Assembly: GCA_964035545.1 (NCBI GenBank)
Contig: OZ037772.1
Span: 12,336,818-12,400,817 of the forward strand
Source of the DNA: Bugula neritina
Taxonomy: Eukaryota > Animalia > Bryozoa
DNA: 64,000 bases
Reading direction: 5' to 3'
Shown here piece by piece: positions 1,611 to 48,135 of the stretch (positions are counted from its first letter, which is position 1; each line of letters starts with the position of its first letter). Position numbers and translations under genes: made by a program. The notes beneath the pieces were generated by a model. The model saw only the letters and a program-made list of their open reading frames with translations, was not told the origin of the DNA and ran no database searches.

Positions 1611-4157
1611 ATGTCAGTTGAGAAGGTTTGGGAAAAGCTAAAAGACTACATTATAGAAGGTGATGTGGATAAGTTCAAAGATACACTGACTTCTCTGTCT
1701 GCTGAGGATAGATTGGAAGTACTTTGTATGCAGAATTTCATTTCCTACCAAGGTAAAACAGTCATCAGTACTACAGTAATGCATATAGCAGCAGAAGGAG
1801 GTCATACAGAGACAGTGAAATGTATTCTAGACTCTGTACCAGCAGCTGACCTGTACAAACTACTCACTATACAGGATAGAAATGATAAGTCAGCTGTACA
1901 CAGAGCAGCAGAAAGAGGTCATACAGAGACAGTGAAATGTATTCTAGACTCTGTACCAGCAGCTGACCTGTACAAACTACTCACTATACAGGATAGAAAT
2001 GATAAGTCAGCTGTACACAGAGCAGCAGAAGGAGGTCATGCAGAGACAGTGAAATGTATTCTAGACTCTGTACCAGCAACTGACTTGTACAAACTACTCA
2101 GTATACAGAAAAGGTTTGGTGATACAGCTGTACACAGTGCAGCAGAAAGAGGTCATACAGAGACAGTGAAATGTATTCTAGACTCTCTACCAGCAACTGA
2201 CTTGTACAAACTACTCAGTATACAGAAAAGGTTTGGTGATACAGCTGTACAGAGAGCAGCAGAAGGAGGTCATACAGAGACAGTGAAATGTATTCTAGAC
2301 TGTGTACCAGCAGCTGATTTGTACAAACTACTCAGTATACAGAATAGAAGTGGTGATACAGCTGTACACAGTGCAGCAGAAGTAGTTCATACAGAGACAG
2401 TGAAATGTATTCTAGACTGTGTACCAGCAACTGACTTGTACAAACTACTCAGTACACAGAATGAATATGGTAATACAGCTGTACACAGAGCAGCAGAAGG
2501 AGGTCATTCAGAGACAGTGAAATGTAGTCTAGACTCTGTACCAACAGCTGACTTGTATAAACTACTCAGTATACAGAATCACTCTGGTTATACAGCTGTA
2601 CACAGAGCAACAGAAGAAGGTCATACAGAGACAGTAAAATGTATTCTATACTCTGTACCAGCAGCTGACTTGTACAAACTACTCAATATAAAGAATAAAG
2701 ATGGTAATACAGCTGTACACAGAGCAGCAGAAGGAGGTCATACAGAGACAGTGAAATGTATTCTAGACTCTGTACCAGCAGCTGACTTGTACAATCTACT
2801 CAGTATACAGAGTAGAAGTGGTAATACAGCTGTACACATGAGTGCAGCAGAAAGAGGTCATACAGAGACAGTGAAATGTATTCTGGACTCTGTACCAGCA
2901 GCTGACTTGTATAAACTACTCAGTATACGGAATCACCCTGGTTATACAGCTGTACACAGAGCAACAGAAAGAGGTCATACAGAGACAGTGAAATGTATTC
3001 TAGACTCTGTACCAGCAGCTGACTTGTACAATCTACTCAGTATACAGAGTAGAAGTGGTAATACAGCTGTACAAAGAGCAACAGAAAGAGGTCATACAGA
3101 GACAGTGAAATGTATTCTAGACTGTGTACCAGCAGCTGACTTGTACAATCTACTCAGTATACAGAGTAGAAGTGGTAATACAGCTGTACACAGTGCAGCA
3201 GAAAGAGGTCATACAGAGACAGTGAAATGTATTCTAGACTGTGTACCAGCAACTGACTTGTACAAACTACTCAGTACACAGAATGAATATGGTTATACAG
3301 CTGTACACAGAGCAGCAGAAGGAGGTCATACAGAGACAGTGAAATGTTATATTCTGGACTCTGTACCAGCAGCTGACTTGTATAAACTACTCAGTATACA
3401 GAATCACTCTGGTTATACAGCTGTACACAGTGCAGCAGAAAGAGGTCATACAGAGACAGTGAAATATATTCTAGACTCTGTACCAGCAGCTGACTTGTAC
3501 AAACTACTCAGTATACAGGGTAGAAATGGTTATACAGCTGTACACAGTGCAGCAGAAAGAGGTCATACAGAGACAGTGAAATGTTATATTCTGGACTCTG
3601 TACCAGCAGCTGACTTGTATAAACTACTCAGTATACAGAATCACTCTGGTTATACAGCTGTACACAGTGCAGCAGAAAGAGGTCATACAGAGACAGTGAA
3701 ATGTATTCTAGACTCTGTACCAGCAACTGATTTAATTGATTTGCTCACTCTGCAGAATAATGCTGGTGAAACAGTTATACATATAATCACATTTAATGGT
3801 CATTCAAAACTAATAAAAAGCATAGTTGAAAGAATGTCAGCAGATGAAATGGGAAAGCTTTTCAGCACAAGAAAAAGTGCATCTCATCCATATGCAACCA
3901 GAGAGCTCATCCCCTTTGAAGGTAAGATAGCCATAAGTTCTAAACTAGCAGCTGTTGTTTTAGAGATAAACCTGCACTAGTGTCTGTTATTTAGTGATTT
4001 TTACACTCTATCAGGTTTTGCTTCAGTGGTATATCTAGATATCAATATTTCTTTAATATTTAAGATTTTTGACAATAGTGAAGAGGACAGGAAACAGCTT
4101 TCAAAAATATTCTTGGAATATTTTATTTTAAGCGTTACCAAACATGATAATAAAATG

Positions 4158-4250
<93 letters not shown>

Positions 4251-7200
4251 TATTGATAATTTGTATATTTTATTTGAATTTCGATGGTTGTATAAACAAA
4301 GTAATATATCACAGCAAAATGGCGGGTTATAAAGAGCTTTGTAAATTTAAAGTAAAATCTCTTTTCAAAAGATGAAAGAGTCCAAAGCTTATAGCAGCCT
4401 ACAAAAAAATATTTTCCTAAACTATGCAACATTATTATCTAATTTGAATTATAGAAATACTCGTTCATAATATGTGAAGCAATTGACTCAATTAAGGAGC
4501 TTTTTAAAAAACAGAGTAAAAGCTATTTATATTCAGTCTGAATCTGTTTTAAAGCCAAAAAATAAAAGCCTTCGGATTGGTCTTGGTCTTCCTGCAAAGC
4601 AAATAAATTAAGACAGGACTTTGCTTTCTTATAACTATAGTCTCATCTCATTGTAAAGTTGAATATCAATGGTTGCTTCTGAAAGAAATACTTTAAACTT
4701 TTTGTTCTATACTGCTTTACATGTTTTCATAAAAAACCCTTTGATTGTGTGCAGACATCAATTGCAGAGTTTGCAAAACTTGCATCAGTTACATATACAT
4801 AACTAGATATGCTAGCCAATGCAAACAAAAACATAACAATTTCTGCTTTGTGGAGTTGTTGTACCTCACACTATTCTTGAATATTAGAAGCGCAGGCCTC
4901 GAAGTTGAGGCATGATTTGGGTTTTCAAAATGCTGCCACAGCAGACAGCATTACTGGACCAAAAGAAGGACAAAGAAGTTCTGCTAAGTTTTCTAATAAA
5001 AGTATGATTTTTAACATTTCTATTTCTACTGTAGCCTAGCTATTGCTATAAGCTTAATTATTAACTTTACATGGGTGTTACTCCTCTAGCACTCGCATCC
5101 TCCACTATCTGTTGTCAAATTTTATATTTTATGTTGTGAGTATCTTTACAAAAATATAATCGCCATTCCAAGATTTTCTTACCTGACCTTACTCTCTAAC
5201 CAGAAGGACAACAAAATAACATATTTTTTACAGAGAAACCAGCTCTCAGCATAGCTGACTCTGGATTTGGAAGTCATGCCACAGCAAGCAGCATCACTGG
5301 AATAGAAGAACAAGGAAGAATAGAAGATGTTAGGGTTTCTAATGAAAGTATGATGCACCAAGTTTATATTTCAGCTGTCAGATTATCTTTACGGTTCAAC
5401 GATACTTTTGTTATTTTTATGCATGTGTGCTCCTCTCTTGTACTGACACTATCTATTATGTCATCCTTGCATATTTGATGTTTTAAATATTATTATTGTT
5501 ATAGATTGGCAAACCAACTTTAAAAAAAAGACATTTCTAAGGTCTTTTTCTAATATTTTGTTAATTTCCACAAATCAATTTTTACAGTGAAGCTGCTTAG
5601 TCTTAGCTCATCCGACTCTGAATATGAAACAACAGACTGGGAGACTTTACCAGAAATACAAGGAATAAGCATGGCATCACTTCTTGATGAAAGTATGATT
5701 TACCAAGCTTCTAATTTAATGTTTTGTTGCTATCTCCACATGCATGCAGTGTTGTTCTCTTTTGAACTGACATTGTCCAGCTATCTGTTCTCATTATTGC
5801 ATATTTAATGTTTTAAATATTGTAGTCTGCTAAATTTCCTAGCTTTTATCAAATTTTGCATTTCTAAAATTTCATTAACTAATTTTTTAGCTTTTCACAA
5901 GTTTCTTTTCAACTAGGAGGACATTATTCCCCAATGCAATATACAACTTCCTATAGTCCTTTTGCAAGCTAAAGTCTTTATATCTTATTATTCGTGGTTT
6001 TCTGTTGATTGTTTTCACTTCGTTGCATATATAGCTGTTCTGACAGTGACCGCTAAACATACACGCAGTAGTAACAACTGCAATATTTAAATGGTTTAAC
6101 TTCCTTAGATAGTATAATTGGTTTCTATTACATAAATCAGACGAAATTCCCAATGGTGTAGACAGTAAATATATATGCAAGCTTCTCCAAATTTCTTTTA
6201 ATAAAAATGATTACCAGAGCTATTATATATTATATGGCTGTTGGCTATTTTGTGGCTTTATATCAAATTTGTTTACTGAATTTTTTGGCTAAAGAGCTGT
6301 GACTAATGAACTTCGTTTTAATGCTGACACTTTCACAATTATTGCTTTTCTACTCAATCAACTCTGTTAATCATTTTTTGCACCTGTTTTTAATGCTTGA
6401 AGCAGTTTAATTTAAAAAAATTAGCAATTTTGTTGTTGTCAATGCTTACCTTCAAAAGTTCATTAAAAGTAAATACTTTATCTATTTGTAGCTAAGTTTA
6501 TATATAAGATAAAGTAGCTATATCACATACAGCTCTGATTTTATAAGTAGAACAAAATATTGAATTCTTCAGTAATAAAAATACAAAACAAAGGACAATT
6601 TACTATAATTATGTATTGTATCATGTATGAGCTTGGACTAATTCCTATTTTCTATTTCAATTTTTTATTGTAGTAAATACTAAACTAAGTGCTAATATAA
6701 TGGCAGCTATTGAAACTTAAGCTATATAATGCTAACTTTCTTACAGAATCGGATATAACTGCACCAGCTGACACTGTAACTCAGAACACTGCTGCAGCTG
6801 ATGAAATGGAAGAAAAGTCCATGAGTTTACTAGATAGCAGTGGTGAGATATACAAATCATTAAATCTTTATAATATATGTTATATTATGTTAGGTATTAC
6901 TTTCTTTCATACTGACATTCTTCAGCCATCACTTTGTGTCATCATCATATATTTTGAAAATTGCTTTTTATGTAGTTTCTATAATTATTATATAATGTAT
7001 ATGAATTTAGACAAGTTTCTATTTTCTATTTTAATTTGCTATTGAAGTAATTATTACAAGTGCTAATGTAGGAGACAGCCATTGGGAAGATTTTTGCTTG
7101 TGATGATTAAATTACTTAGACTACAACATTAACTTTCTTACAGAATTGGATATGAGTGCACCAGCTGACACTGTAACCCAGAGCACTGCTGTAGCTGATC

Positions 7201-9584
7201 AAATGGAAGAAGAGTCTATGAGTCTATCAGATAACAATGGTGAGATACAGTGTATTATAATTATTCTAGGTTTTGTTATGTAGGGGATATTTTATTTTAT
7301 ATATTACAGGCATTCTTCAACTATCACTATGTGACCTCATCATATTTTGTTTGCATAATAATTGTTACAAAGTCTAAGAGAAATATTTTAGATTTAAAGC
7401 TAAATTAGTGTTGGTAATTTTTCAATAGCCTATACCTGTTCTCAACATTTGATATGTCAGCTTAGCTGGTTCCAATAACAATTATAAGCAATACTATCAT
7501 AAATAAGGATAGTTATAGTACTAAACAAAGTACAGCAAAGCCAAAATTGCAGACTTCTTTGATTAATCTATAAAAATGAAATTGGTTACTTTTCTTGTAA
7601 ACAAATACTGTGCAGGTTCGTTTTCACTTATTGAAAATTCTTATTAAAAATAGCTTTTCTGCTTGAATCTTATAGGTCATAAATGCTGAGACATAAATCT
7701 TGATTGGGAAATGTATTTTTATTTTATTTAAATGTTTTGTTCGCCATACAAAAACTAATTGTAGAACCTGTGATACTGAACCCTGTAACTGGAGAGTTGT
7801 CTCCAGACGCACCTTATGAACCTGCACCAGAGTCTCTAATGGATGCTATTGAAAGGTGAGTTTGTTATTATTATTGCTATACATATACTACACCACAAAT
7901 TGAGTGATTTTAATAACCTATTGCTTTGACTTTATGTTTATTCTGCACTGAAAAAGTTTCTTAGCTTGTATAAATAATTATGCAACTTTTGGTAATTACT
8001 TTTCTTTTATAGTCTTCTCAATAGTCACAACATCAGCGATGTCACATTTGGACAATTTGCTGACGATTGGAGAAAGATTTTGGTACTAGGTAAAAATGTT
8101 CTAAAAATTCAGTCCGACCTCCAGAGGTACCTGCACAGTGAATCACTCACAAAGTTTGAGATAACATTGAAGAATAACAACAATCCATTTACAATGAAGT
8201 CTCTCAGCTGGGAGAAGGTCCTGACAATTAACAAAAAGAAAGTAGCAAAGAATGAAAAGCTGTGGGGAAACACAGTAAAGCAAACTGTCTGTGAAGCGTT
8301 TGTTATTGCTGAAAGGAAATGTTCTAACAACAATGAGCCATGTAAGAGAGTCTACGCAGTGGCTCCAGCACATCTGGTTTTTGCTGACAAGCAAAATGAA
8401 GAGGCAGCTGCAGCTGATAGCTTTTATATGAAGCAGACCGCTATGCAAGAAAGTATAGCTGAGCTAAACAGTCGCCAACTTGCTGGTCCACCAAAGAAAC
8501 CAGATTCAGCAAATGGCCAGACTAATCAAACTCAAAATGGGCAAGACCATGATGACGTGCCTGATGTTGACAGTGATGATGAAAATCTGTCACTAGTTTC
8601 CAAAGTAAGAACAGAGGTGGAGAGCAAATCTACCAGAAGACAATATTTCATCAGAACCGAAGATCAACACGCTGCCTCTATTGTAGAGTTACAGCATCCA
8701 GTACTGCTTGGCTATCGTCATTGGTACAAGCAAGTGGAGTCTACTTTATCCAGCAGTAACACAACACCAGAGTGTCCAGAACTAAAGTGTGACACAACCA
8801 GGGCACCACACTGTCCTCACAGGTTCATGAATGACTTGGCACTCCTTTTGATCGCCCACAAACATGCTAAGAGCTTTCAAAGTACATTGGATTCAAAGAC
8901 ACAAAAGTTTTTTGAAAAACTAACTTCAAGCAATGTAAATGGAGCTGTGAGACAAGGCACGCTAATTTCAAAAGAACTTTTACAACTCTCTACTGTTTTG
9001 GATCTGCAACAGCTGGCTGGTAGAGAAGTAATGGTTAAGGGAATGCTGGGGAGAGTTGTCAATATTCGACTCAAAGCCAAACCTGGTCAAAGACTGGGAC
9101 AACATATAAAGTTTACGCTTACATCACCAAACACAGCGAGTGCTGAGCAGTAAGTTGAGATCTCATTTTAAAAATACGTATTTTAGATCAGTTAAAGAAA
9201 TTGCTTAGTTCTCCTAGCTAAAGTTAGTAAAACTAATAAAGTACTCAGTGACTGCATTGCAGTTGCTTGTAATATAATTGAGTTTGTCCTTGACATATTA
9301 TTCTTAGGAGCCTGATAAGAGGAGACTGTGGAAGTTTGGTTTATGTCAAGTGTGCAGGTGTGCTCAGACCAGTTGGAATGCTTGTTGGTGAAGCAATCAT
9401 AGGTGATAACGCAACTCCTGCAGGTCCCATCTACCAGGCTGTGGTGCTGAGTCAAGCATTCAAGAACATGGAGTGTGACTATCCACATCAAGTAGCCAAC
9501 ATTGAGCTCTTCTCTCAAGAAAGGTATTCTCAGCTTGCTACAGACGGTCATTTTGATGACTCATCACTTTTCGATGTGTCATAA
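1611..9584 (+). CDS. Spliced gene: ankyrin-repeat array + acidic linker + C-terminal chymotrypsin-fold (PA clan) protease domain with Cys nucleophile, ~1446 aa
   Basis: Exons 1611-3921, 4888-5001, 5234-5347, 5588-5692, 6747-6842, 7144-7239, 7765-7855, 8013-9149, 9308-9584. All introns are GT-AG, phases match (1,1,1,1,1,1,2,2) and the total of 4341 nt is open to TAA at 9582-9584. In-frame TGA at 1548 upstream of ATG 1611. Motifs: VYAVAPAH (His 8371-8373), FMNDLALLLI (Asp 8833-8835), LIRGDCGSLVY (Cys 9327-9329), then PVGMLVG. Extra exons in 3922-4887 and a 24-nt microexon at 6141-6164 are possible but unresolved. Confidence 0.8.
1770..3810 (+). repeat. Coding tandem repeat: 17 near-identical 117-bp (39-aa) ankyrin repeats plus a diverged C-cap
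   Basis: Unit TAVHxAAExGHTETVKCILDSVPAADLYKLLSIQxxxGx resembles the ankyrin TPLHxAAxxGHxxxVxxLL consensus with a 6-aa extension; three 3-nt insertions preserve frame. Confidence 0.92.
4160..4246. repeat. (TA)n microsatellite
   Basis: Pure TA run in intron 1 of the ankyrin-protease gene. Confidence 0.97.
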
Positions 9585-9809
9585 GAACTGAAATGAAAGT
9601 AATGTGAAGAGGGAAATATTTTCATTTGTAAGTTAGAAACAAATTGCCTGCAACCTTATAGTATACAAACAGATGGAAATAACAGCCTGTGTTCTATATA
9701 CACGTCTGCTTTTGTTAGCTTTTGATTATTAATTACTGTTACAAAACACATTCTATACTTAATATACAACCATATCATGTAATCTATGCATATTGTCATA
9801 ATTCTATTA

Positions 9810-17799: not shown

Positions 17800-22934
<5,135 letters not shown>

Positions 22935-30433: not shown

Positions 30434-33400
30434 TTATGGTCTGAAGACATTGTCAGCAAAGCTGCCGATGTAGTTACCGGCTGGGTAGTAGTTGGCGACG
30501 ACAAACACTCTTCCTTTGCTGTCCCCGGCCTTACCTATGCCTAACTCCTCGCTTCCCTTCCACACCACCTGTGAGAAGTGACCTGCAAGTATCCAATCAG
30601 CAGTCAGGTAACTATGACATGTAGATGATCGGCCAATCACTGATATTGTAGCACATGATCGGCCAATCACTGATGTTGTAGCACATGTTGAGTAGTTTGT
30701 TATGTTACAGCAGCACCATGTAGTAAGTTGACCAATCAGTGATGATGTAATAAAACTTAGTTCCAAGTTAGAATGTAATTTACATTAAGAGAGGGACACA
30801 AGACAAGCCTAGACTATATACGTTTTAGCTTAAGTTCTTGATGAGAGAATATAATCACAGTGTAGATAGTAGCCTATCAGTTTGCAACTCATTTACTATT
30901 GGCAACTTATTTACAATTTGTTGTTTCATGAGTAAATTTACAAAACAAGCCAATCAGCATGACCAATAGAAACTCACCCGCAGACCCCGAGTTGCTCCGC
31001 CCACTGTAGTCGTAGGTTGGTTCCTCGTCATACCATTGCTTAGTCACTTCTTCACCTGCAGGCAAATTATAACAGTATTTGTCAGTCTATCTCATGTTTT
31101 GGACAATATAACACTATATTGGCTCAAACTACGCTGATATATTGTTATGCAGGTAAAAATTCAGACTACGCAGGTAAAGATACCTACTTTGTAGGTAAAA
31201 ACTAACCAGTATAATCTGCTCCAGCAGAGCCCCATTTAGACGCGACGTTCTCGCCTAGAGGTTGACCCTTGAACTTGTTGGTGCTGTGCTTCAGTGTGGA
31301 AATGCTGGCCAGATGTTCCGCCCACTTCTGGGCTGTCTTACAGAGTTCAGAGTTCAGTTTCAGCTTACCAACTCTGTGCTTGGCTCTATAAAAATATACT
31401 AATGTATGTTCTAAAAGCTTTTTATGTTAAACATGAGGTTCAATACATCCTGCTTTTTGTAAATGTAACCCATTTTAGGAAACAACAAATCGCATTTTGT
31501 CTTTTTTTAGTAAAATAATGTAATTATTATGATGAAAAATATTACATCTAGTTTTATATATCTTCTAAAATTATATATTTTCCATAATTTTATTATATGT
31601 TTTCTATTATTATACAAATTTTACATAATTCTAATATCTTACATAATTATATATATATATATTACATAATTTTATTATATATTTTCCATAATTTTATTAT
31701 ATGTTTTCTATTATTATACACATTTTACATAATTCTAATATCTTACATAATTATATATATATTTTACATAGTTTCATTATATATTTTACATAATTTTATT
31801 ATATGTTTTCTATTATTATACATATTTTACATAATTATAATATCTTACATAATTATATATATATATTTTACATAATTTTATATAATATAGTTGCATGTTG
31901 AGACAAAGTCTCACCTCCATTTGTTGTGAGCCTCCAAAGCATCTTTTTCAAACGCACTAGCTGACTGCTTAGGTTTGTAGGGAACTGATTTACCAGACTA
32001 CAACAGTAACAACTCAGACTATAGTGCTGTTACACGCTTCCCCTAGTGACTAGTCAGTTACAGCTCTATATCTTAGTGGAAGTGAAATAAAAGCATATTA
32101 ATGTAACATTATATTCTTGTATGTAAAAGCCAAGCTGAATAAATTAAAATAAATAAAATCATAAATAGCTTAAATAGCTTTATGGTAATCTGAATAAATT
32201 ACAGTACAAAATTATATTGAAAAAACAATATCGTTATATAAACAATTTCATTGTTGGTTTTGGCAATTAATTATTTTTTATTTTTATATAATATAGTTAT
32301 ACATATTCTACATAATCATACGATCACTTTAAACATTAGCAAGGGTGCTTACATCATTGTTGTTGAAGGATGGGTTCTCTATCTTCTCCACCCTCTCTTC
32401 TGTTATGACTTCAACTGAACCATCAGGCTTGGTTATTGTCTTGGTGGTGGTTACCTAGCAATGAATAACAACATATAACTATACTTTGTACACTTTGCTG
32501 TGTGAGGTACAATAGTAATATATTCAAACTATAATTTGTACATTTTGCTGTGTGTGGTACAATAGTAATATATTCTAGATACACTTTGTATTCTTTGCTG
32601 TGTGAGGTAGAATAGTATATTATTATAGGTATTACTATCTCACCGTCCGTGTGCCGTAGCTCTTGGTAGGAGTAGCTTTGCAATCTCTGTGACCTATCAA
32701 CATGTACATAGACATATATCAACAGATACATAAACATCTATCAACAGTTACATAGACATCTATCAACAGTTATATAAACATCTATCAACAGTTACATAGA
32801 CACCTATCAACAGTTACATAGACATATATCAACAGCTACATAGACATATAGCAACAGCTACATAGACATATATCAAATGTAAGCAATCTGTAAATACTTG
32901 AAGTCCACAAAATGAAGTTATTGGAAAATGAATTGTATGAAAATTGAGCTAATTTAGGAATTTTTTGCACTTTTTTGCTTTAATGCTTAAACATAACTAT
33001 AACTCCTTTTAAAAAATTATAACTCGATCAATATACTTAATACTAAATGAAACGATACTATTCGAGTATAATCAGACCCAACAAATAAATATAGTTTGTT
33101 AACATCATTATTCATGTGACAGCGTGATGAACTCATTGGTCACATGACAGTGTGATGAACTCATTGGTCATGTGACATTGTAATGAACTCAACTATTAAA
33201 TAGGTCAAGGTTACTTACTAGATTTCGCCTCGTCATCACTAGAAGACGAGTCACTTCCTTGTTTGTCAGCCTTCCCTTTGAACAGAGCCTTGACCTTTGA
33301 CCCGACAGACTGACCAGATGCCAGAGGGAAGACGTTGTCTTGGTACATGCCGATGTAGTTACCTGCGGGTGTATAGTTGGCTACGACTATGCACTTCCCG

Positions 33401-35413
33401 CCTTTGGTTGCCATGCCGACGCCCATCTCCTTGCTGTCCTTCCACACCACCTGGCTGAAGTGACCTGCACAGTAGACATTCAACTTGTCAATAATTAGCT
33501 GGGATCACAGTTTAAAGAAGCTAAACATTTTTTTAAAAAGAAACATGGCGTATATGAGGCAATGTTCAAAATTATAAAATAATAATTCACAACTGCATGC
33601 ATGGTCTATAAAACTTCAACGGATGATAGCAAAAAACCTGCTATCTGAAATACATATAAATCAAACATAATTTGTTTGTAGCAATTTAGGAGTTATCTTT
33701 CCTCTGATACCAGGAAGTAGCCTGAACTCATCATACTATATATAGTATAGAAAGTAGAGATGCTCACCCTTATTCTACTTTGGAGTTATGTTCACTTAAC
33801 TCACCTGTTTTAAGCCCGGAAGTGTGTCCTTTGAAGTCATAGTCCTTAATCTCACTGTACCACTGCTCAACCACCTCTGAGCCTACAATATTACTAGAAG
33901 TAAGGGAGGGGCAGTAGATACCCCTAATGTATGCAAATAGTTGTGAGAAGTTCAACTAACCAAAGGTCTATATCTTATAAACACTAAGAAATTCAATAGC
34001 AAATAATTACAGCATGACATATTGCAGTATTGAGTATTGTACATCACTTAAGGCCTGGCCTCACGATCGTGAGAATCACACAAAATTGTGTGATGATTTT
34101 CGTGAGTTATCCTCTCGTTATGACTAGCCACATGCTCGTCGGACGAAACACATAATAAATAGTCAGTGAATGAGTCTTGCACGAGATACAAACAACAGAA
34201 AATTGCCAAATAGAGAAACATCGTAAAAATGAAATAATTGCTGTTGCTAAAATTCTATTGACCAATCAAATGGTGCTTATCGTTGATTGTAATTTTTTGT
34301 CCATCTTAACAGTTGTGTACACTCAACGAAGACGATTTCTTTTGAGTTTTCTCTAATTTTCTTGTACAAATGTTTTTTCGTGTCAAATAGACGATTTCGT
34401 GTGATTCCCACGATCTTGGGGCCAGGCCATTATCCATGTGTTGATACAGCGTGCATTTACTGCAGGCAATGAAAAGTTGCTATTAGAATATTGCAAGTCA
34501 ACTCTATTACAAACAAACTTCTGTAAATTTAATGAGCTCACTGGCATTGTCAAACAGAAACAACAATACAAACTATTAATAAGGGGGTCCTTTGAGTACA
34601 CCAGCTCCAACAAAGGGATAAATTTTAATTATTGCAGTACAAACCACACAAGGCTCTCTATGATAATATAATAATATGCTTTATTGTTTACTTATCAAAA
34701 CTCTACTCTTTAATATTTAAGCTCTAGTTTTATTCAAGCTAGTTTTAGTAAACTTTGAGTGAAACTAAGAGTAAACATGAATTGAATTTACTTAAATTTC
34801 TTCTCATGAAAGGAATGACAACTCCACAGTGTAATACTACGAGAAACTTTAACCTTTGACCTGGTGCACTCTGACCTCACCTGTGTATTCGGTTACAGCT
34901 CCAGTTGAAGTCTTGCCAGCTATGTTCTCTCCCAGAGGGTTTCCCTTGTACTCGTGCTTACTGTGTGCCAACTTATCGCCTCTGAAATCAAAGAGTTTCA
35001 AGATACATGAGCCTGAATAGCCAAGTTTGAAATAGTATAGCTGATATTGGTACCAACAGAATTTATATTTTAATATACAGTAAGAGAGAATAATATACTG
35101 TAAGAGAGAATAATATGCTGTAAGAGAGAATAATATGCTGTAAGAGAGAATAATATACTGTAAGAGAGAATAATATGCTGTAAGAGAGAATAATATGCTG
35201 TAAGAGAGAATAATATGCTGTAAGAATTAGTATAATATACAGCAAACAGAGTAAGTAACTCCAAATCACTCACTTGATAAGGTTGAGTGCCCAGTTCTCT
35301 GCCAGGACGCACAGTTCACTGTTCAACTTTAGCTTTGGAACACCATGCAGTTTTCTCTTCTCATTGTGGGCCTGTAGGCATTCGCTCGCAAACTTACTGC
35401 TTGTTGCAGACAT
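30434..35413 (-). CDS. Tandem CAP/SCP-domain protein, GAPR-1 (GLIPR2)-like, 401 aa
   Basis: Exons 35413-35274, 34981-34881, 33882-33805, 33464-33219, 32693-32644, 32454-32353, 31997-31915, 31385-31207, 31055-30978, 30582-30434 (1206 nt, phases consistent). Two copies of HNxxRxxH / GEN / WYxE / GHFSQVVW / VANYxPAGN; no signal peptide; in-frame stops upstream of the ATG. Confidence 0.9.
34051..34428. mobile_element. MITE (Harbinger/Tourist-like), copy 2
   Basis: tta|aggcctggcctcacgatcgtgagaatcacac ... gtgtgattcccacgatcttggggccaggcc, ~30-bp TIR; same family as 11106-11322. Confidence 0.8.
35078..35225. repeat. 20-bp minisatellite (taagagagaataatatgctg)
   Basis: 7 tandem copies in a CAP gene intron. 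Confidence 0.92.
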
Positions 35414-42063: not shown

Positions 42064-45000
42064 CTACGGCTTCCTCGACTTTATTGCAGCTCGAATAACT
42101 TCCTCTATAGAAGTGGAGGGGGGATAATTCTAAAAGAAGACATTTTCACACTGTATATACTACATGTTCATACTGTATATACTACATGTTCACACTGTAT
42201 ACACTACATGTTCACACTGTATATACTACATGTTCACACTGTACACACTACATGTTCACACTGTATATACTACATGTTCACACTGTATATACTACATGTT
42301 CACACTGTATATACTACATGTTCACACTGTATATACTACATGTTCACACTGTATATACTACATGTTCATACTGTATATACTACATGTTCATACTGTATAT
42401 ACTACATGTTCACACTGTATACACTACATGTTCACACTGTATATACTACATGTTCACACTGTACACACTACATGTTCACACTGTATATACTATATGTTCA
42501 CACTGTATACACTACAGTAAACAGTTGACTCAACGTACCTGCAACAACTTCATGTTAGACGCAAAGTCATTCTTCAGGACGTTTCTCCTCACCAACCTAA
42601 AGTATATTCAAGTCTTATGAATAGCTGGAGTAAAGTACAACTAGTAGTTCTAAAACTTCATAAATAAACGCTAAGTGCGGGTCTAAATTGCAAGAAAGCC
42701 CAACCCGCGAGTGACCTGCCACACACAATGCGTGTGTTGCGAGTGCGGAAATTTATTAGCTAATGATCTTGGCACTTAACGTAACTGATCGCCTATAAAC
42801 GTTTGTTTTTAAATCTACGTCAGCAGCAAATTGATTTTAGATATTGCAAATGCAAACTATATGAAATTGTTTTAATTCAGTTCGCTAAAAGCTAAAACAT
42901 GAATTAATAAAAGTGTGCTCGATAAATGATAATGAGCCAATTAGATCAAACACGCACGAGCTTGCCGCACTTCTCGCTCAGCATGATAGACGCATGAAAT
43001 TCCGCACACAACGTCCCATTTTTGGGCTAAACGGGTTTCCCATGCGTCACGCGCGAGTAAATCGCATTGTGTGGCCCTACACTAAGACATGCTACGTGTT
43101 AACCTAGTTACAGACTGACCTAGTTACATTTGAGATATGAGTAGAAGTTGACCTACATATGGGTAAACTTTGACCTATATAAGTCAACTCACCGTATCAT
43201 AGCACAGCAGACGTCTACTAGGAAGCCGAACCTTTGAGAGTCACTAAACAAAGAGTCCCATAGCCTGAGGACATCTACAATCATAGACTGAGATTCACCA
43301 GAGACAGCACCAGGGAAAGAGAACATTGCGGGGAATTATATATGCAATGGGTGGGGAACTTCTTTTACATGAGGGCTAAGTTCAGAAATCAACAAAAACG
43401 AATATCAAACCCATAATAAATGTTATTATAATAAAGTAATTTATCACCAATCCTATACTGTGCTAATCAGAATACATATAACAGTTTTTACTCGTCTTAA
43501 GCATTAAAAGGGCCACTGAAAATTGGGCAAAGAGCCACAGGTGGCCCTGAGGCCCGCAGTTGCCCATCCTTGATATATACTAAGCAATAGATAAGTGTCC
43601 AACACCTGATTGTACCTCTACAAACTAGCTCACATGACCCACAGAGTAATAGTTATATACAACATGACTTCCAGTACTAACTAAGAGTAAAGACATATTA
43701 ACCTAGTCTACTGTATTTCTGAGTAGATTAGTATAGAGTAGAGTAGTATAGTATAAAACAGAGTAGAGTAGTATAGAGTAGTATAGTATAGAACAGAGTA
43801 GAGTAGTATAAAGTAGAGTAGTATAAAGTAGAGTAGTATATAGTATAGAGTAGAGTAGTATAGAGGAGAGTAGTATAAAGTAGAGTAGTATATAGTATAG
43901 AGTAGCATATAGTAGAGTAGAGTAGTATAGAGTAGAGAGTATAGAGTAGTACAGAGTAGTATAGAGTAGTACAGAGTAGTAGAGAGTAGAGTAGAATAGA
44001 GTAGAGTAGTATATAGTATAGAGTAGCATATAGTAGAGTAGAGTAGTATAGAGTAGAGTAGTATAGAGGAGAGTAGTATAAAGTAGAGTAGTATATAGTA
44101 TAGAGTAGCATATAGTAGAGTAGAGTAGTATAGAGTAGAGAGTATAGAGTAGTACAGAGTAGTATAGAGTAGTACAGAGTAGTAGAGAGTAGAGTAGAAT
44201 AGAGTAGAGTAGTATATAGTATAGAGTAGCATATAGTAGAGTAGAGTAGTATAGAGTAGAGTAGTATAGAGTAGAGTAGTATAGAGTAGAGTAGTATATA
44301 GTATAGAGTAGCATATAGTAGAGTAGAGTAGTATAGAGTAGAGAGTATAGAGTAGTACAGAGTAGTATAGAGTAGTACAGAGTAGTAGAGAGTAGAGTAG
44401 AATAGACACACCTGGCAGCTCAAACTCCTGAGACAGCAGCAAGGTGATCCAGCGGAAGGCAAAGAACTCTGGTTTGATGTGCTGACTCAGCAGATGCTGG
44501 TGGACAGTGGGATCCGAGTCCCGCAGTGAAGACATCAGGATATGCATGTTGCCCCCTGGTGGGAGATTACAGAACACTATTGGTACTATTGGTACTGTTG
44601 GTACTATTGTTACTGTTGGTACTAGTACTGTTGGTATTGGTGTGGAAGTTTATTACTAGAATGTTCTCAAAACAGCAGCTAACCAATGAGAATTACCCAC
44701 CTATATCCTCAACTACCCTCACCTATACCCTCAACTACCCACCTATACCCTCAACTACCCACCTATACCCTCATCTACCTACCTATGCCACAGATACTGT
44801 CATCTAGAGACTTGATGAAGTTGTCCCTCACTTCGGCCATTAAACTGGTGAAGCAGTAGAAGCTGTCTGCCTCAGCGTGCTGCGCCCACTCCAGGTTAGG
44901 ATCTGAGGCCATAGTGAAGTAGAGCGGACCGAGTAGCTCATTCATCCCCTGTCAATAGCAGACAACTCCTAGACAAGGTTAGATATATTACTCACAGAGA

Positions 45001-46224
45001 GCATAACTCCAAAGTATGCCGTCTGAATATATGTTGACAAACAGGGGTAGAGTGAGTGGATATACAGGAGTGGAGTGAGTAGACAGACAGGGGTGGAGTG
45101 AGTAGACAGACAGGGGTGGAGTGAGTAGACAGACAGGGGTGGAGTGAGTAGATAGACAGGGGTAGAGTGAGTATACAGGCCGGGGGTGGAGTGAGTATAC
45201 AGACAGGGGTGGAGTGGAGTGAGTAGACAGACGGGGTGAAGTAGGGACTCACCTGCACATACTGGATGCCCGGGTTGAGTTTAGCATATATAAAGAGCAT
45301 TCTCTCCACAACCTCCCAGTGTGCCTCCTCACTCTCCCCCAAAGTGTGAAAGGGTCTGGTGTCCCCCGTCTTGTGTCTCGTCGTGTCCATCTGGAATTCA
45401 GGTACTCAGACTATTAGCATATCACAATGTTACTCAGCCTTCAGAGTCGCCTTACCTTGTACATGCTTTCTCTGAGAGTAAATACAACCATCTGATTAGC
45501 ATGGAACTTGACTATTTGCTATGAACAAGGGGCATGCAACAGCCACCCGTCATTTAGCCCAAAACCTACTTTAGTGACTCCCAGTCTACTCCTTGAGACT
45601 GTGTGGGACTCCAGATAGCAGTTCTCTACTCTTTTCCTAAGAGCACCGATCCCGTTCTCCGTGTTGGTGAGGCGTTCGCACGGGAAACGTGTGGCTTTTT
45701 GAAAGAATTCAAGTTCCGGGTATAGACGTCTATGGAATATAGTAGATTATAGAGTATATAGTATAGTATAGCGTATATAGTAGATTATAGAGTATATAGT
45801 AGATTATAGAGTATATAATAGATTATAGAGTATATAGTAGATTATAGAGTATATAGTAGATTATAGAGTATATAGTAGATTATAGAGTATATAGTAGATT
45901 ATAGAGTATATAGTAGATTATAGAGTATATAGTATAGTATAGAGTATATAGTAGATTATAGAGTATATAGTAGATTATAGAGTATAAAGTAGAGAGTATA
46001 GAGCATACAGATGCCTATGATAGGAAAATATTACATATATAGATGATGAAGGATGAAAGAATACAAAGTACATGCAGGTGCAAGTACAAGTTCAAAGTTC
46101 AACATGTGAATACCAGAGATAGTAATCAGTGTGTTGAGATGATTAGAGGAATGTTCTATGATTGTATGAAGCAGAGTATGTTGTATAATAGATGAGATAA
46201 CAAGAGTATCATTGTGATACATGT

Positions 46225-46258
<34 letters not shown>

Positions 46259-46264
46259 CAGTAA

Positions 46265-46338
<74 letters not shown>

Positions 46339-48135
46339 CCACTACTAGTAGCAGTCACTGACCTGCAGTCCTTGTCAATCTGCAGCAGCTTCTCGTTGTC
46401 TTTAAAGTAAACACACCACTCACTGTCAGGGTTGGGATTCAGAGGCTAAAACATGGAAATAAATAAATTTATTCACACAGCCTGAGATCTGTAGAGCAAA
46501 CAGTGAATGAGGAGAAGAGGAGTTGAGGGACTCACATGATCTGAGACTGTTTCCTCGCTCTTCACCTCACTCCCAGGCTTAATTATCATCTCTTCTATGA
46601 AACTTTGATATGCTGCTCTCTGTTTGTCGAGTGTGTCTTGCCATTCAGATCTTTTAACTGGAAGGTAGTATAACAGCAGTTTCCATGCCAACGACCTTAT
46701 ACCCTTTACTTCTGGGCAACCTGTGTAAACACGACACGCTACTATTAGAGCAGATAACTCCACAAGCACAATAGAAAATCATAAACACGGTCAAGTATAC
46801 ATTATTTGTTTTCAACAAAAACCACAAGCTGAAATTTATTCCTTTTAAGCCTTCAGTAAATCAAATTTTAGTTATTAACCAAAATAGGGAATCAGTTGAA
46901 TCAACATGCAAATACAATTTAAGTATATGAAATCTCAAATCTTGAAAAGCAACTGTGAAAAGACCCTGCTGGGAGATATTTTGAGCTAAACAGAGATAAA
47001 AACTAACACACTATTCAGTTCGTGATATGACAATGCTAGCTATCTGAGTCGGCCCAGATTGCCAGATACTGACCATTTAGTACATTGAGCCAGTAACATG
47101 TTTGAGAAATTTAAAAGCTTTCCTGAGAAAATTAATGATAGGTCAACAGAGAGTAAGTTCTTGACTACTTAAAATAGTAAAACCCCCAGAATTATACTGA
47201 AATATAGGAAAGAAGAAAACTCCACCCATTACTATAATTACTATATGCATAAAGCTACCCATTACTATAGTGACTACATGCACACACCAAATGCATACAG
47301 CAGTGAGGATAATGACATATTAATAAGCTGTGTTGACTACCAACCTGAGTGGAAACATCGTTTAGAAAGTTCTTTCAAATCAATCTTTTCCTGACTGAGC
47401 AGCTGTTCAAACTCATGAACTCTAAAGAAGATAGTCAGCATATCTCAATGAAAGAATATCACCAGCAATGGAGTTGAATGTATCATTATAAATAAAATAC
47501 AAAAACTTGAATAGAAACTAGGAAGACAAGTGATTTAGATGATCAAAATGAAAGTGAAACTTATAATTATTCAAATTCTTAATCATCATTACTGTTACAA
47601 TATTTTTATAATTGTCAATAAGAACAAAAACAATATTTATTAAATTATTGATGATCATAATGAAAGTCAGATTACAATGATAATAACTCAATGAGTAAAA
47701 GGTGGACTCAAGGTAAAGAACTTAGGTGTAATTCCAATATGAATGCATATCAAAATTGATGTGAATAATCATATTGATAATCACACTTTGCATTACAATT
47801 ACTAATAATGATTATATTTATAATAATAATTATATTTACTGTATTACTAATAGTAATTAGTATTACAATATGAATAATTAGGATGTTAAACAATAGGAAT
47901 ATAATTATTATTAGCATTAATGGGTTATCAATATGAATATTATTTAATTACGATGAAAATCTAAAAATAACACTAACTATTTATATTTATAACAAATGAT
48001 TACGGTATTGAATTTGATAATGACAATCATCATGATCATAGAATTAGAAATCCCCGTGATTATGATAATCGTAAAAGGAATAATCAACTATTATTTATAA
48101 AAAAACAATAAAAACCTGAACATTTGAGAGTCCAT
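42064..48135 (-). CDS. TBC1D13: TBC1 domain family member 13 (Rab GAP), ~392 aa
   Basis: Exons 48135-48116 (tentative), 47421-47345, 46720-46536, 46445-46363, 45729-45570, 45390-45253, 44948-44783, 44555-44412, 43274-43193, 42596-42539, 42129-42064. Motifs DHPLNPNPDSEW, QIDKDCRRLYP (Arg finger), AHWEVVERMLFIYAKLNPGIQYVQGMNEL (Gln finger), FAFRWITLLLSQEF. Confidence 0.92.
42146..42516. repeat. 22-bp minisatellite (cacactgtatatactacatgtt)
   Basis: About 17 copies filling the last TBC1D13 intron. Confidence 0.95.
42673..43083. mobile_element. Possible MITE remnant
   Basis: CpG-rich island in an AT-rich intron, with gccacacacaatgcg (42718) inverted to cgcattgtgtggcc (43063); boundaries unclear. 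Confidence 0.35.
43346..43572. mobile_element. Degenerate hAT-type MITE
   Basis: Termini aatgggtggggaac / gttgcccatccttg; flanks atatatgc / atatatac (7/8 match). Confidence 0.55.
43725..44405. repeat. Compound (AGAGT/AGTAT)n satellite
   Basis: Pentamer-based array with higher-order duplication; the source of the YYSTL ORFs. Confidence 0.95.
45040..45240. repeat. ~23-bp minisatellite (gacaggggtggagtgagtagaca)
   Basis: About 8 copies next to a TBC1D13 splice donor. Confidence 0.88.
45738..45990. repeat. 20-bp minisatellite (atatagtagattatagagt)
   Basis: Tandem copies in a TBC1D13 intron. Confidence 0.92.
46225..46338. repeat. (TAG)n microsatellite
   Basis: Source of the poly-Leu ORF. Confidence 0.96.

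Follow-up and report, generated by a model that had tools for sequence, protein, structure and literature searches.

Does a run of near-identical ankyrin repeats in the genome of the bryozoan Bugula neritina belong to one gene with the protease-like exons that follow it, and if so, what kind of protein does that gene encode? The question arises at positions 1611 to 9584 of a 64,000-nucleotide stretch of contig OZ037772.1 (assembly GCA_964035545.1; hereafter the window). There, an initial annotation had proposed a sensor-effector system in which an ankyrin array is fused to a cysteine protease of the chymotrypsin fold. We found that the ankyrin-protease fusion is a real spliced gene. Its product belongs to the PA clan of proteases but lies outside the S1A family, the viral 3C families, and the nucleotide-binding leucine-rich repeat receptors (NLRs). 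What is surprising here is the predicted cellular cysteine nucleophile in a trypsin fold, together with natural switching between Ser and Cys; receptors that combine repeats with a protease are of an already known kind.

The array and the protease are spliced into one gene

The nine exons, separated in every case by GT-AG introns, joined into a single open frame of 1446 amino acids (1445 via a tandem acceptor). The APAH, NDLALL, and GDCGS motifs fall in trypsin order at residues 1093, 1249, and 1360 (Table 1), and this part of the initial annotation holds with one correction. At the first acceptor, TAG and AAG stand in tandem with both AGs in frame, and the RNA of relatives and a GenBank model fit a start of exon 2 at 4891, not 4888. 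By hydropathy, no transmembrane segment or signal peptide was seen in the 1446-residue product, in line with the annotation (maximum Kyte-Doolittle value over a 19-residue window of 1.41; charged N terminus). No NTPase domain (NACHT or NB-ARC) was found in any exon. All linker exons are symmetric phase 1; exons 2, 3, and 4 are mutually related and exons 5 and 6 are 85% identical, the flexible linker having grown by exon duplication. The linker had been described as acidic, which is true of exons 4 to 7 (21 to 24% Asp plus Glu) but not of exons 2 and 3.

Contigs from four probable RNA runs were aligned to positions 3740 to 9700. In three of the four runs, contigs spliced the ankyrin exon from 3922 into exon 2, and in these transcripts it does not end at the stop at 3980. 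Joints equivalent to 3921/4891, 5001/5234, 7239/7765, 7855/8013, and 9149/9308 were present, while the RNA contig joints displayed did not include 5347/5588 or 5692/6747. Coverage was concentrated over exons, and the 96-nucleotide linker exons were skipped or multiplied in related transcripts. Since the contigs are mostly 90 to 99% alike to the window, they derive from alleles or close paralogs and not provably from this exact copy, and they are unable to demonstrate one full-length transcript. A minor unspliced contig runs across 3952 to 4085; in run X3, contig depth was 36.8 for the spliced form versus 3.9 for the unspliced form.

Predicted gene models show the same architecture. GenBank model EB796_005942 (P0163, 944 amino acids), from another B. 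neritina assembly, comprises an ankyrin array, a linker, and a complete protease that contains GDCGS. Its locus is syntenic with the window, with flanks matching out to 23 kb and exons 8 and 9 being 92 to 93% identical. Repeat number, which we had been led to compare, differs between the two assemblies (8 in P0163 versus 17 in the window), with the count of 8 needing care because of frameshift-like spacings in the more error-prone assembly of P0163. A further model, P0011, joins an array to the linker and to exon 8, and P0003 contains exons 8 and 9 with the same junction.

The GenBank assembly carries the genes in tandem about 10.7 kb apart (L042:10001-23300 and L043:10001-21545), against a single copy in the window, a copy-number difference between assemblies. 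Exon 8 of L042 is frameshifted, either as a pseudogene or by long-read error. At L043:3800-9960, an insertion of about 6 kb in the intron 5' of exon 8 holds a 173-residue minus-strand open frame and is probably a mobile element.

The protease domain is predicted to adopt a chymotrypsin fold nearest to rice NAL1

Exons 8 and 9 and the family profiles had no Pfam or PDB sequence match, and none of 14 family members had a Pfam match. The traits of S1A proteases (a signal peptide, an IVGG activation site, a Pfam Trypsin match) are absent from the window protein. Two database proteins, P0003 and P0031, took its place in structure prediction, and AlphaFold2 was run on P0003, which is 91% identical to it, from a 107-row alignment. 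The model reached a predicted local distance difference test score of 85.5 and a predicted TM score of 0.80 and is a double beta-barrel of the chymotrypsin fold. All top 50 Foldseek and VIA matches to it are PA-clan proteases, which bears out the fold initially assigned to the C-terminal region. The first 25 Foldseek matches were rice NAL1 (E 5e-7, TM 0.36); next came complement factor B, thrombin, and a 3C protease. With VIA-align, Z was 14.7 for NAL1 (242 residues, root mean square deviation 4.3), 12 for DegS/HtrA, 11.7 for FAM111A, and 10.5 for hepatitis A 3C. Among viral models, there were 43 structural matches at E<=0.001, the best with an E of 2.5e-5 and a TM of 0.22. Protein language-model neighbors fell in the Nal1_C, Trypsin_2, and Peptidase_S64 clusters. 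The Nal1_C profile (PF25819) gave no match in the B. neritina genome, but its control gave no match anywhere either.

In the P0003 model, the predicted catalytic residues are placed as in trypsins, with the His after a strand, the Asp opening a strand, and the G-D-C-G-S loop before a strand. The annotated His-Asp-Cys order is thus upheld for residues predicted from sequence and model. Between His and Asp lie two insertions, one helical and acidic and the other a C-P-x3-C-x7-C-x-H segment that could possibly bind zinc. An alpha-beta-beta-alpha-beta module of about 65 residues precedes the protease in all family members. A fold search with this module gave a best Z of 6.1, with NAL1 absent among the matches; KH-like and ring-motif matches were rejected as weak and of common topology. 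The Ssy5 protease has a pro-domain. By analogy with it and with the front domain of NAL1 (PMC12012508), our guess is that the module might be a regulatory or pro-domain.

Cys and Ser alternate at the nucleophile within an expanded family

A profile search of the B. neritina genome returned 29 exon-8 matches and 30 exon-9 matches, or about 27 loci, which are spread over at least seven chromosomes, confirming the anticipated family expansion. Neither His nor Asp varies among the 19 aligned copies. The nucleophile position was occupied by Cys (TGT or TGC) in 13 of the 20 scored copies and by Ser in 6 (always AGT or AGC), with the motif lost in the remaining copy. The nucleophile is therefore only ever Cys or Ser, and Cys is kept across 13 paralogs that are 20 to 70% identical. 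On an exon-8 tree that included Watersipora subatra proteins, Cys and Ser members were interleaved, and branches with good support require two switches or more, the sister pair of P0143 (Ser) and P0146 (Cys) among them. As the root of the tree is not established, the direction of switching rests on the Ser outgroups NAL1 and HtrA. Pairwise ratios of nonsynonymous to synonymous change (dN/dS) in exon 8 were 0.19 to 0.36, which indicates purifying selection.

The window gene groups with copies at C2:12.84 Mb and C1:13.63 Mb (support 99/98), both with the same type of ankyrin array upstream on the same strand. These three ankyrin-fused copies, at a dS of 0.75 to 0.9 and a dN/dS of 0.19 to 0.30, have kept the array, the donor, and open protease frames. 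A truncated fourth copy is found at C3:6705634-6707721 (L038), where almost nothing separates the array from a stop-containing remnant of exon 9, the linker and exon 8 being absent. Elsewhere, C8:8.80-8.86 Mb (L005-L008, L023-L025) holds three tandem protease copies, in one of which the nucleophile codons are missing and exon 9 follows exon 8 at a distance of about 9 kb, and an exon-9 copy at C1:14042006-14042203 (L026) has no nearby exon-8 match. None of the B-box matches listed lies near a protease locus, with 150 of 312 candidates scored.

In Watersipora RefSeq models, the protease domain occurs alone, after a guanylate-binding protein (GBP)-type GTPase domain (P0065, with a GESGS nucleophile loop), or before leucine-rich repeats (LRRs; P0146 and P0143). 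The alternative partner domains envisaged by the initial annotation thus exist. With spans of 205 and 372 kb, the two LRR models are less secure, although they share a homologous junction. A caspase gene is nested within the 372-kb protease-LRR model P0143. The closest Watersipora ankyrin homolog is without a protease. Considering the Cys/Ser switching and ankyrin being one of several partners, we read these genes as a modular protease family. Of the single sensor-effector system first proposed, the ankyrin-protease fusion stands, but ankyrin is only one partner and Cys switches with Ser.

Named sequence matches were all bryozoan, and word-based homolog searches reached nothing beyond bryozoans. 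An Atlas structure search with P0031 found look-alikes of the whole unit in ascomycetes (TM 0.59) and molluscs (TM 0.56), and another mollusc look-alike cluster carries HEPN_DZIP3. Based on these structural look-alikes, the wider clade is probably older. No description of the ankyrin-protease architecture or of the protease family was found in the literature searched, with subscription papers mostly outside the search.

Variation in the array is concentrated on the predicted binding face

Exon 1 matches Pfam Ank_2 with an E of 4e-85. Its 17 repeat anchors are spaced 39 to 40 residues apart, with a mean identity of 90% at the nucleotide level and 79% at the amino acid level, so the repeats are near-identical, as annotated, and the array evolves in concert. 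Variation is concentrated in the loop preceding the first helix and in the first helix. Six ankyrin positions are randomized in designed ankyrin repeat protein (DARPin) libraries, and we used these as an a priori binding-face set. In the window array, the six columns take 18 of the 41 distinct amino acid changes (p=5e-5), and enrichment at the same columns was found with five arrays pooled (p=7e-6). The window array alone had 18 replacement changes versus 1 silent change at these columns, while the five pooled arrays had 2.0 replacement changes per site versus 3.8 silent changes per site. Because silent change is also high in the pooled arrays, positive selection on the binding face is suggested but not proven. 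The array had been called hypervariable; the concentration of amino acid change at binding-face columns agrees with this, but a dN/dS above 1 was not upheld with five arrays pooled. Long single-exon ankyrin clusters with frames of up to about 1000 residues and no such protease nearby also occur at C2:30.5 Mb, C3:4.5, 15.4, and 17.3 Mb, and C9:9.3 Mb.

A candidate sensor-protease and its alternatives

What might such a protein do? We propose, as the likeliest reading but an evenly balanced judgment, that it is a single-chain sensor-protease working in the cytosol, in innate immunity or allorecognition, for which we infer catalysis, ligand, and gating. The concave face of the array would bind a foreign or non-self protein. 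Binding would cluster the chains or release a restraint, possibly the small alpha/beta module that precedes the protease. The Cys protease would then become active and cleave its own linker and/or a downstream substrate, for which gasdermin or pro-caspase are candidates, and cleavage would trigger defense or cell death. The Cys itself may have derived from Ser within a cellular family via single AGY/TGY changes, convergent with viral 3C proteases. This proposal draws on the fusion model, the fold, the invariant His and Asp, purifying selection, binding-face change, the roughly 27 loci, and the GBP and LRR partners. It also draws on the mollusc look-alike cluster with HEPN_DZIP3, the repeat-number difference of P0163, and the presence in the genome of three or so gasdermin genes over the Pfam cutoff, which are candidate substrates (C2:2048552, 4286293, and 4310959-4312395). 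From the literature, we add that repeats of such high conservation are uncommon except in immune receptors, at 0.8% of metazoan ANK/TPR/WD repeats (PMC4986451), and that fungal ANK/TPR/WD-protease fusions control gasdermins by processing them (PMC8851545).

Several observations weigh against the sensor-protease proposal. No gasdermin gene adjoins the family loci, the matches on C2 at 2.0 and 4.3 Mb being far away, and the window gene has ordinary genes as neighbors. No nucleotide-binding oligomerization domain (NOD)/STAND switch was found in the fusion. Many conserved single-exon ankyrin arrays in the B. neritina genome have no such protease nearby, and synonymous change is also raised at the binding-face columns in the pooled arrays. 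Engineered Ser-to-Cys trypsins are far less active. Lastly, NAL1, the nearest characterized relative, is a developmental regulator (PMC12012508). A stronger version of the proposal would make these genes the first cellular family of active chymotrypsin-fold Cys proteases, in which a NAL1-like enzyme changed from Ser to Cys repeatedly and acts as effector in single-chain receptors for immunity or allorecognition, whose ankyrin, LRR, and GBP sensors are interchangeable, the array being a natural DARPin library. We put this forward tentatively and hold it to be somewhat doubtful.

The closest solved relative, NAL1, degrades transcription regulators within a hexameric cage, and transcripts occurred in several unrelated RNA runs. 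Both would suit an array that docks a constitutively active or oligomer-gated NAL1-like protease onto an endogenous substrate in development, metamorphosis, or protein turnover, with no sensing of non-self. We consider this fairly unlikely, as a fixed endogenous partner would not favor 8 versus 17 repeats at the syntenic locus, copy number that varies between assemblies, or change focused on the binding face. The Cys form could also be weak or dead, acting as a pseudo-protease, covalent trap, or decoy that binds without substrate turnover. Classical trypsin is crippled by the Ser-to-Cys swap, and motif residues are lost in some relatives, one copy having no GDC codons; but the invariant His and Asp, the retention of Cys in 13 divergent paralogs, and a position restricted to Cys or Ser make a weak or dead enzyme unlikely in our view.

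Neutral exon shuffling would place a mobile exon, encoding ankyrin repeats and bearing a phase-1 donor, upstream of a protease, in a fusion that is recent, short-lived, and non-adaptive or in a copy that mostly ends at the 3980 stop. The confinement of this fusion type to a three-copy clade plus a truncated copy, the phase 1-1 linker exons, the minor unspliced contig, and the Watersipora ankyrin homolog without a protease all fit that account. It is improbable given that three copies at such dS values keep the array, donor, and open frames under low dN/dS and that spliced depth exceeds unspliced depth in run X3. Domestication of a viral 3C-like cysteine protease would explain the His-Asp-Cys order and GDCG, which are the 3C signature, and the 43 viral structural matches. 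We rejected a viral 3C origin and regard it as very improbable, since the viral matches are weaker than those of NAL1 in E, TM, and Z, introns are conserved in a spliced host gene without viral polyprotein context, and Ser and Cys members interleave, one base apart.

Should the Cys members prove active, viral 3C proteases would have a naturally occurring cellular equivalent. With the Ser and Cys sister enzymes P0143 and P0146 one base apart, the old question of how a trypsin fold changes its nucleophile would then be open to direct test. Should the array gate the enzyme, the sensor-protease would be a candidate receptor in bryozoan immunity or in the self/non-self recognition of colonies, and it would parallel, in an animal, the death switches that fungi build from repeats and a protease. 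In the literature searched, no molecular receptor for immunity or colony recognition was described from a bryozoan.

Features of the locus and other genes in the window

Table 1. Features of the ankyrin-protease gene, with positions in the window
Feature	Position	Strand	Basis or remark
Exon 1: start codon, N-cap, ankyrin array, C-cap (residues 1-770)	1611..3921	+	Paralogs keep phase-1 donor at 3922; RNA joint from 3922 in 3 runs
Ankyrin array, 17 repeats	1787..3730	+	Period 117 nucleotides, three repeats 120 nucleotides; beta-hairpin loop and inner helix columns variable
Exon 2, linker, phase 1-1	4888..5001	+	Tandem acceptor, start 4888 or 4891
Exon 3, linker, phase 1-1	5234..5347	+	Exon 2 duplicate (65% of nucleotides, z 8.3)
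Exon 4, acidic Ser/Thr-rich linker, phase 1-1	5588..5692	+	Akin to exon 3; RNA contigs support donor end
Exon 5, acidic linker, phase 1-1	6747..6842	+	85% identical to exon 6
Exon 6, acidic linker, phase 1-1	7144..7239	+	Frame check, RNA contigs
Exon 7, linker end and first helix of pre-protease module	7765..7855	+	Frame check, RNA contigs, fold model
Pre-protease alpha-beta-beta-alpha-beta module, ~65 residues	7825..8175 (boundaries approximate)	+	Spans intron 7; family-wide conservation; without clear fold match
Exon 8, bulk of chymotrypsin-fold domain, two large insertions	8013..9149	+	Fold model, paralog alignment
Predicted catalytic His (APAH)	8371..8373	+	Invariant, 19 paralogs
C-P-x3-C-x7-C-x-H insert	8773..8820	+	In most B. 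neritina paralogs; candidate zinc site (inferred)
Predicted catalytic Asp (NDLAL)	8833..8835	+	Invariant
Exon 9: nucleophile loop, last strands, C-terminal helix, stop	9308..9584	+	Frame check, RNA contigs, fold model
Predicted nucleophile Cys, codon TGT, in GDCGS	9327..9329	+	Motif position in exon 9

Three other loci in the window, all on the minus strand, were noted. At 19279-19557, an exon matches Pfam Trypsin (E 2e-10) and belongs to a conventional S1A trypsin-type protease unrelated to the family described here. Two similar CAP-domain exons (GAPR-1-like) at 30437-30766 and 33214-33483 probably belong to a multi-CAP gene. The exons at 43708-46769, pieces of which had no Pfam match, read like a TBC/Rab-GAP gene that we take to be TBC1D13-like.

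Comparison with known systems

Rice NAL1 (Nal1_C, PF25819; PDB 8PN2 and 7Y77) is the best structural match of the Bugula protease, and with it and Ssy5/S64-type proteases the protein shares a predicted intracellular nature, a small domain before the protease, and the His-Asp-nucleophile order. Unlike NAL1, to which it is about 12% identical, the Bugula protein is without a Pfam match and has a Cys nucleophile, an ankyrin array, and some 100 additional residues separating His from Asp; its front module gave no match to the ATP-binding domain of NAL1. FAM111A/B, an autocleaving antiviral restriction factor (PMC9798293), is likewise an animal intracellular trypsin-fold protease without a signal peptide. 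However, it has a Ser nucleophile, ubiquitin-like domains plus a PIP box, and no repeat array, and it is a weaker structural match than NAL1.

The viral PA-clan Cys proteases (picornavirus 3C, MEROPS C3, and kin) have the same chymotrypsin fold, His-Asp-Cys order, and GDCG loop. In a 2019 survey, all nine PA-clan Cys families were viral and from positive-strand RNA viruses only (PMC6524800). In contrast, the Bugula gene is cellular, contains introns, is structurally nearer to NAL1, and appears to have gained its Cys from an AGY Ser within the family. The fungal systems differ in using a subtilisin (S8) or CHAT protease or a NOD switch and in lying beside gasdermin genes, whereas the Bugula protein has a trypsin fold, no NOD, and no adjacent gasdermin. 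Nonetheless, it resembles the fungal HET-Q2-like fusions in carrying a repeat array (ANK, TPR, or WD) and a protease in one chain (PMC8851545), and it resembles the ANK arrays of fungal NLRs in its conserved repeats, repeat-number polymorphism between two assemblies, and variable concave face (PMC4986451).

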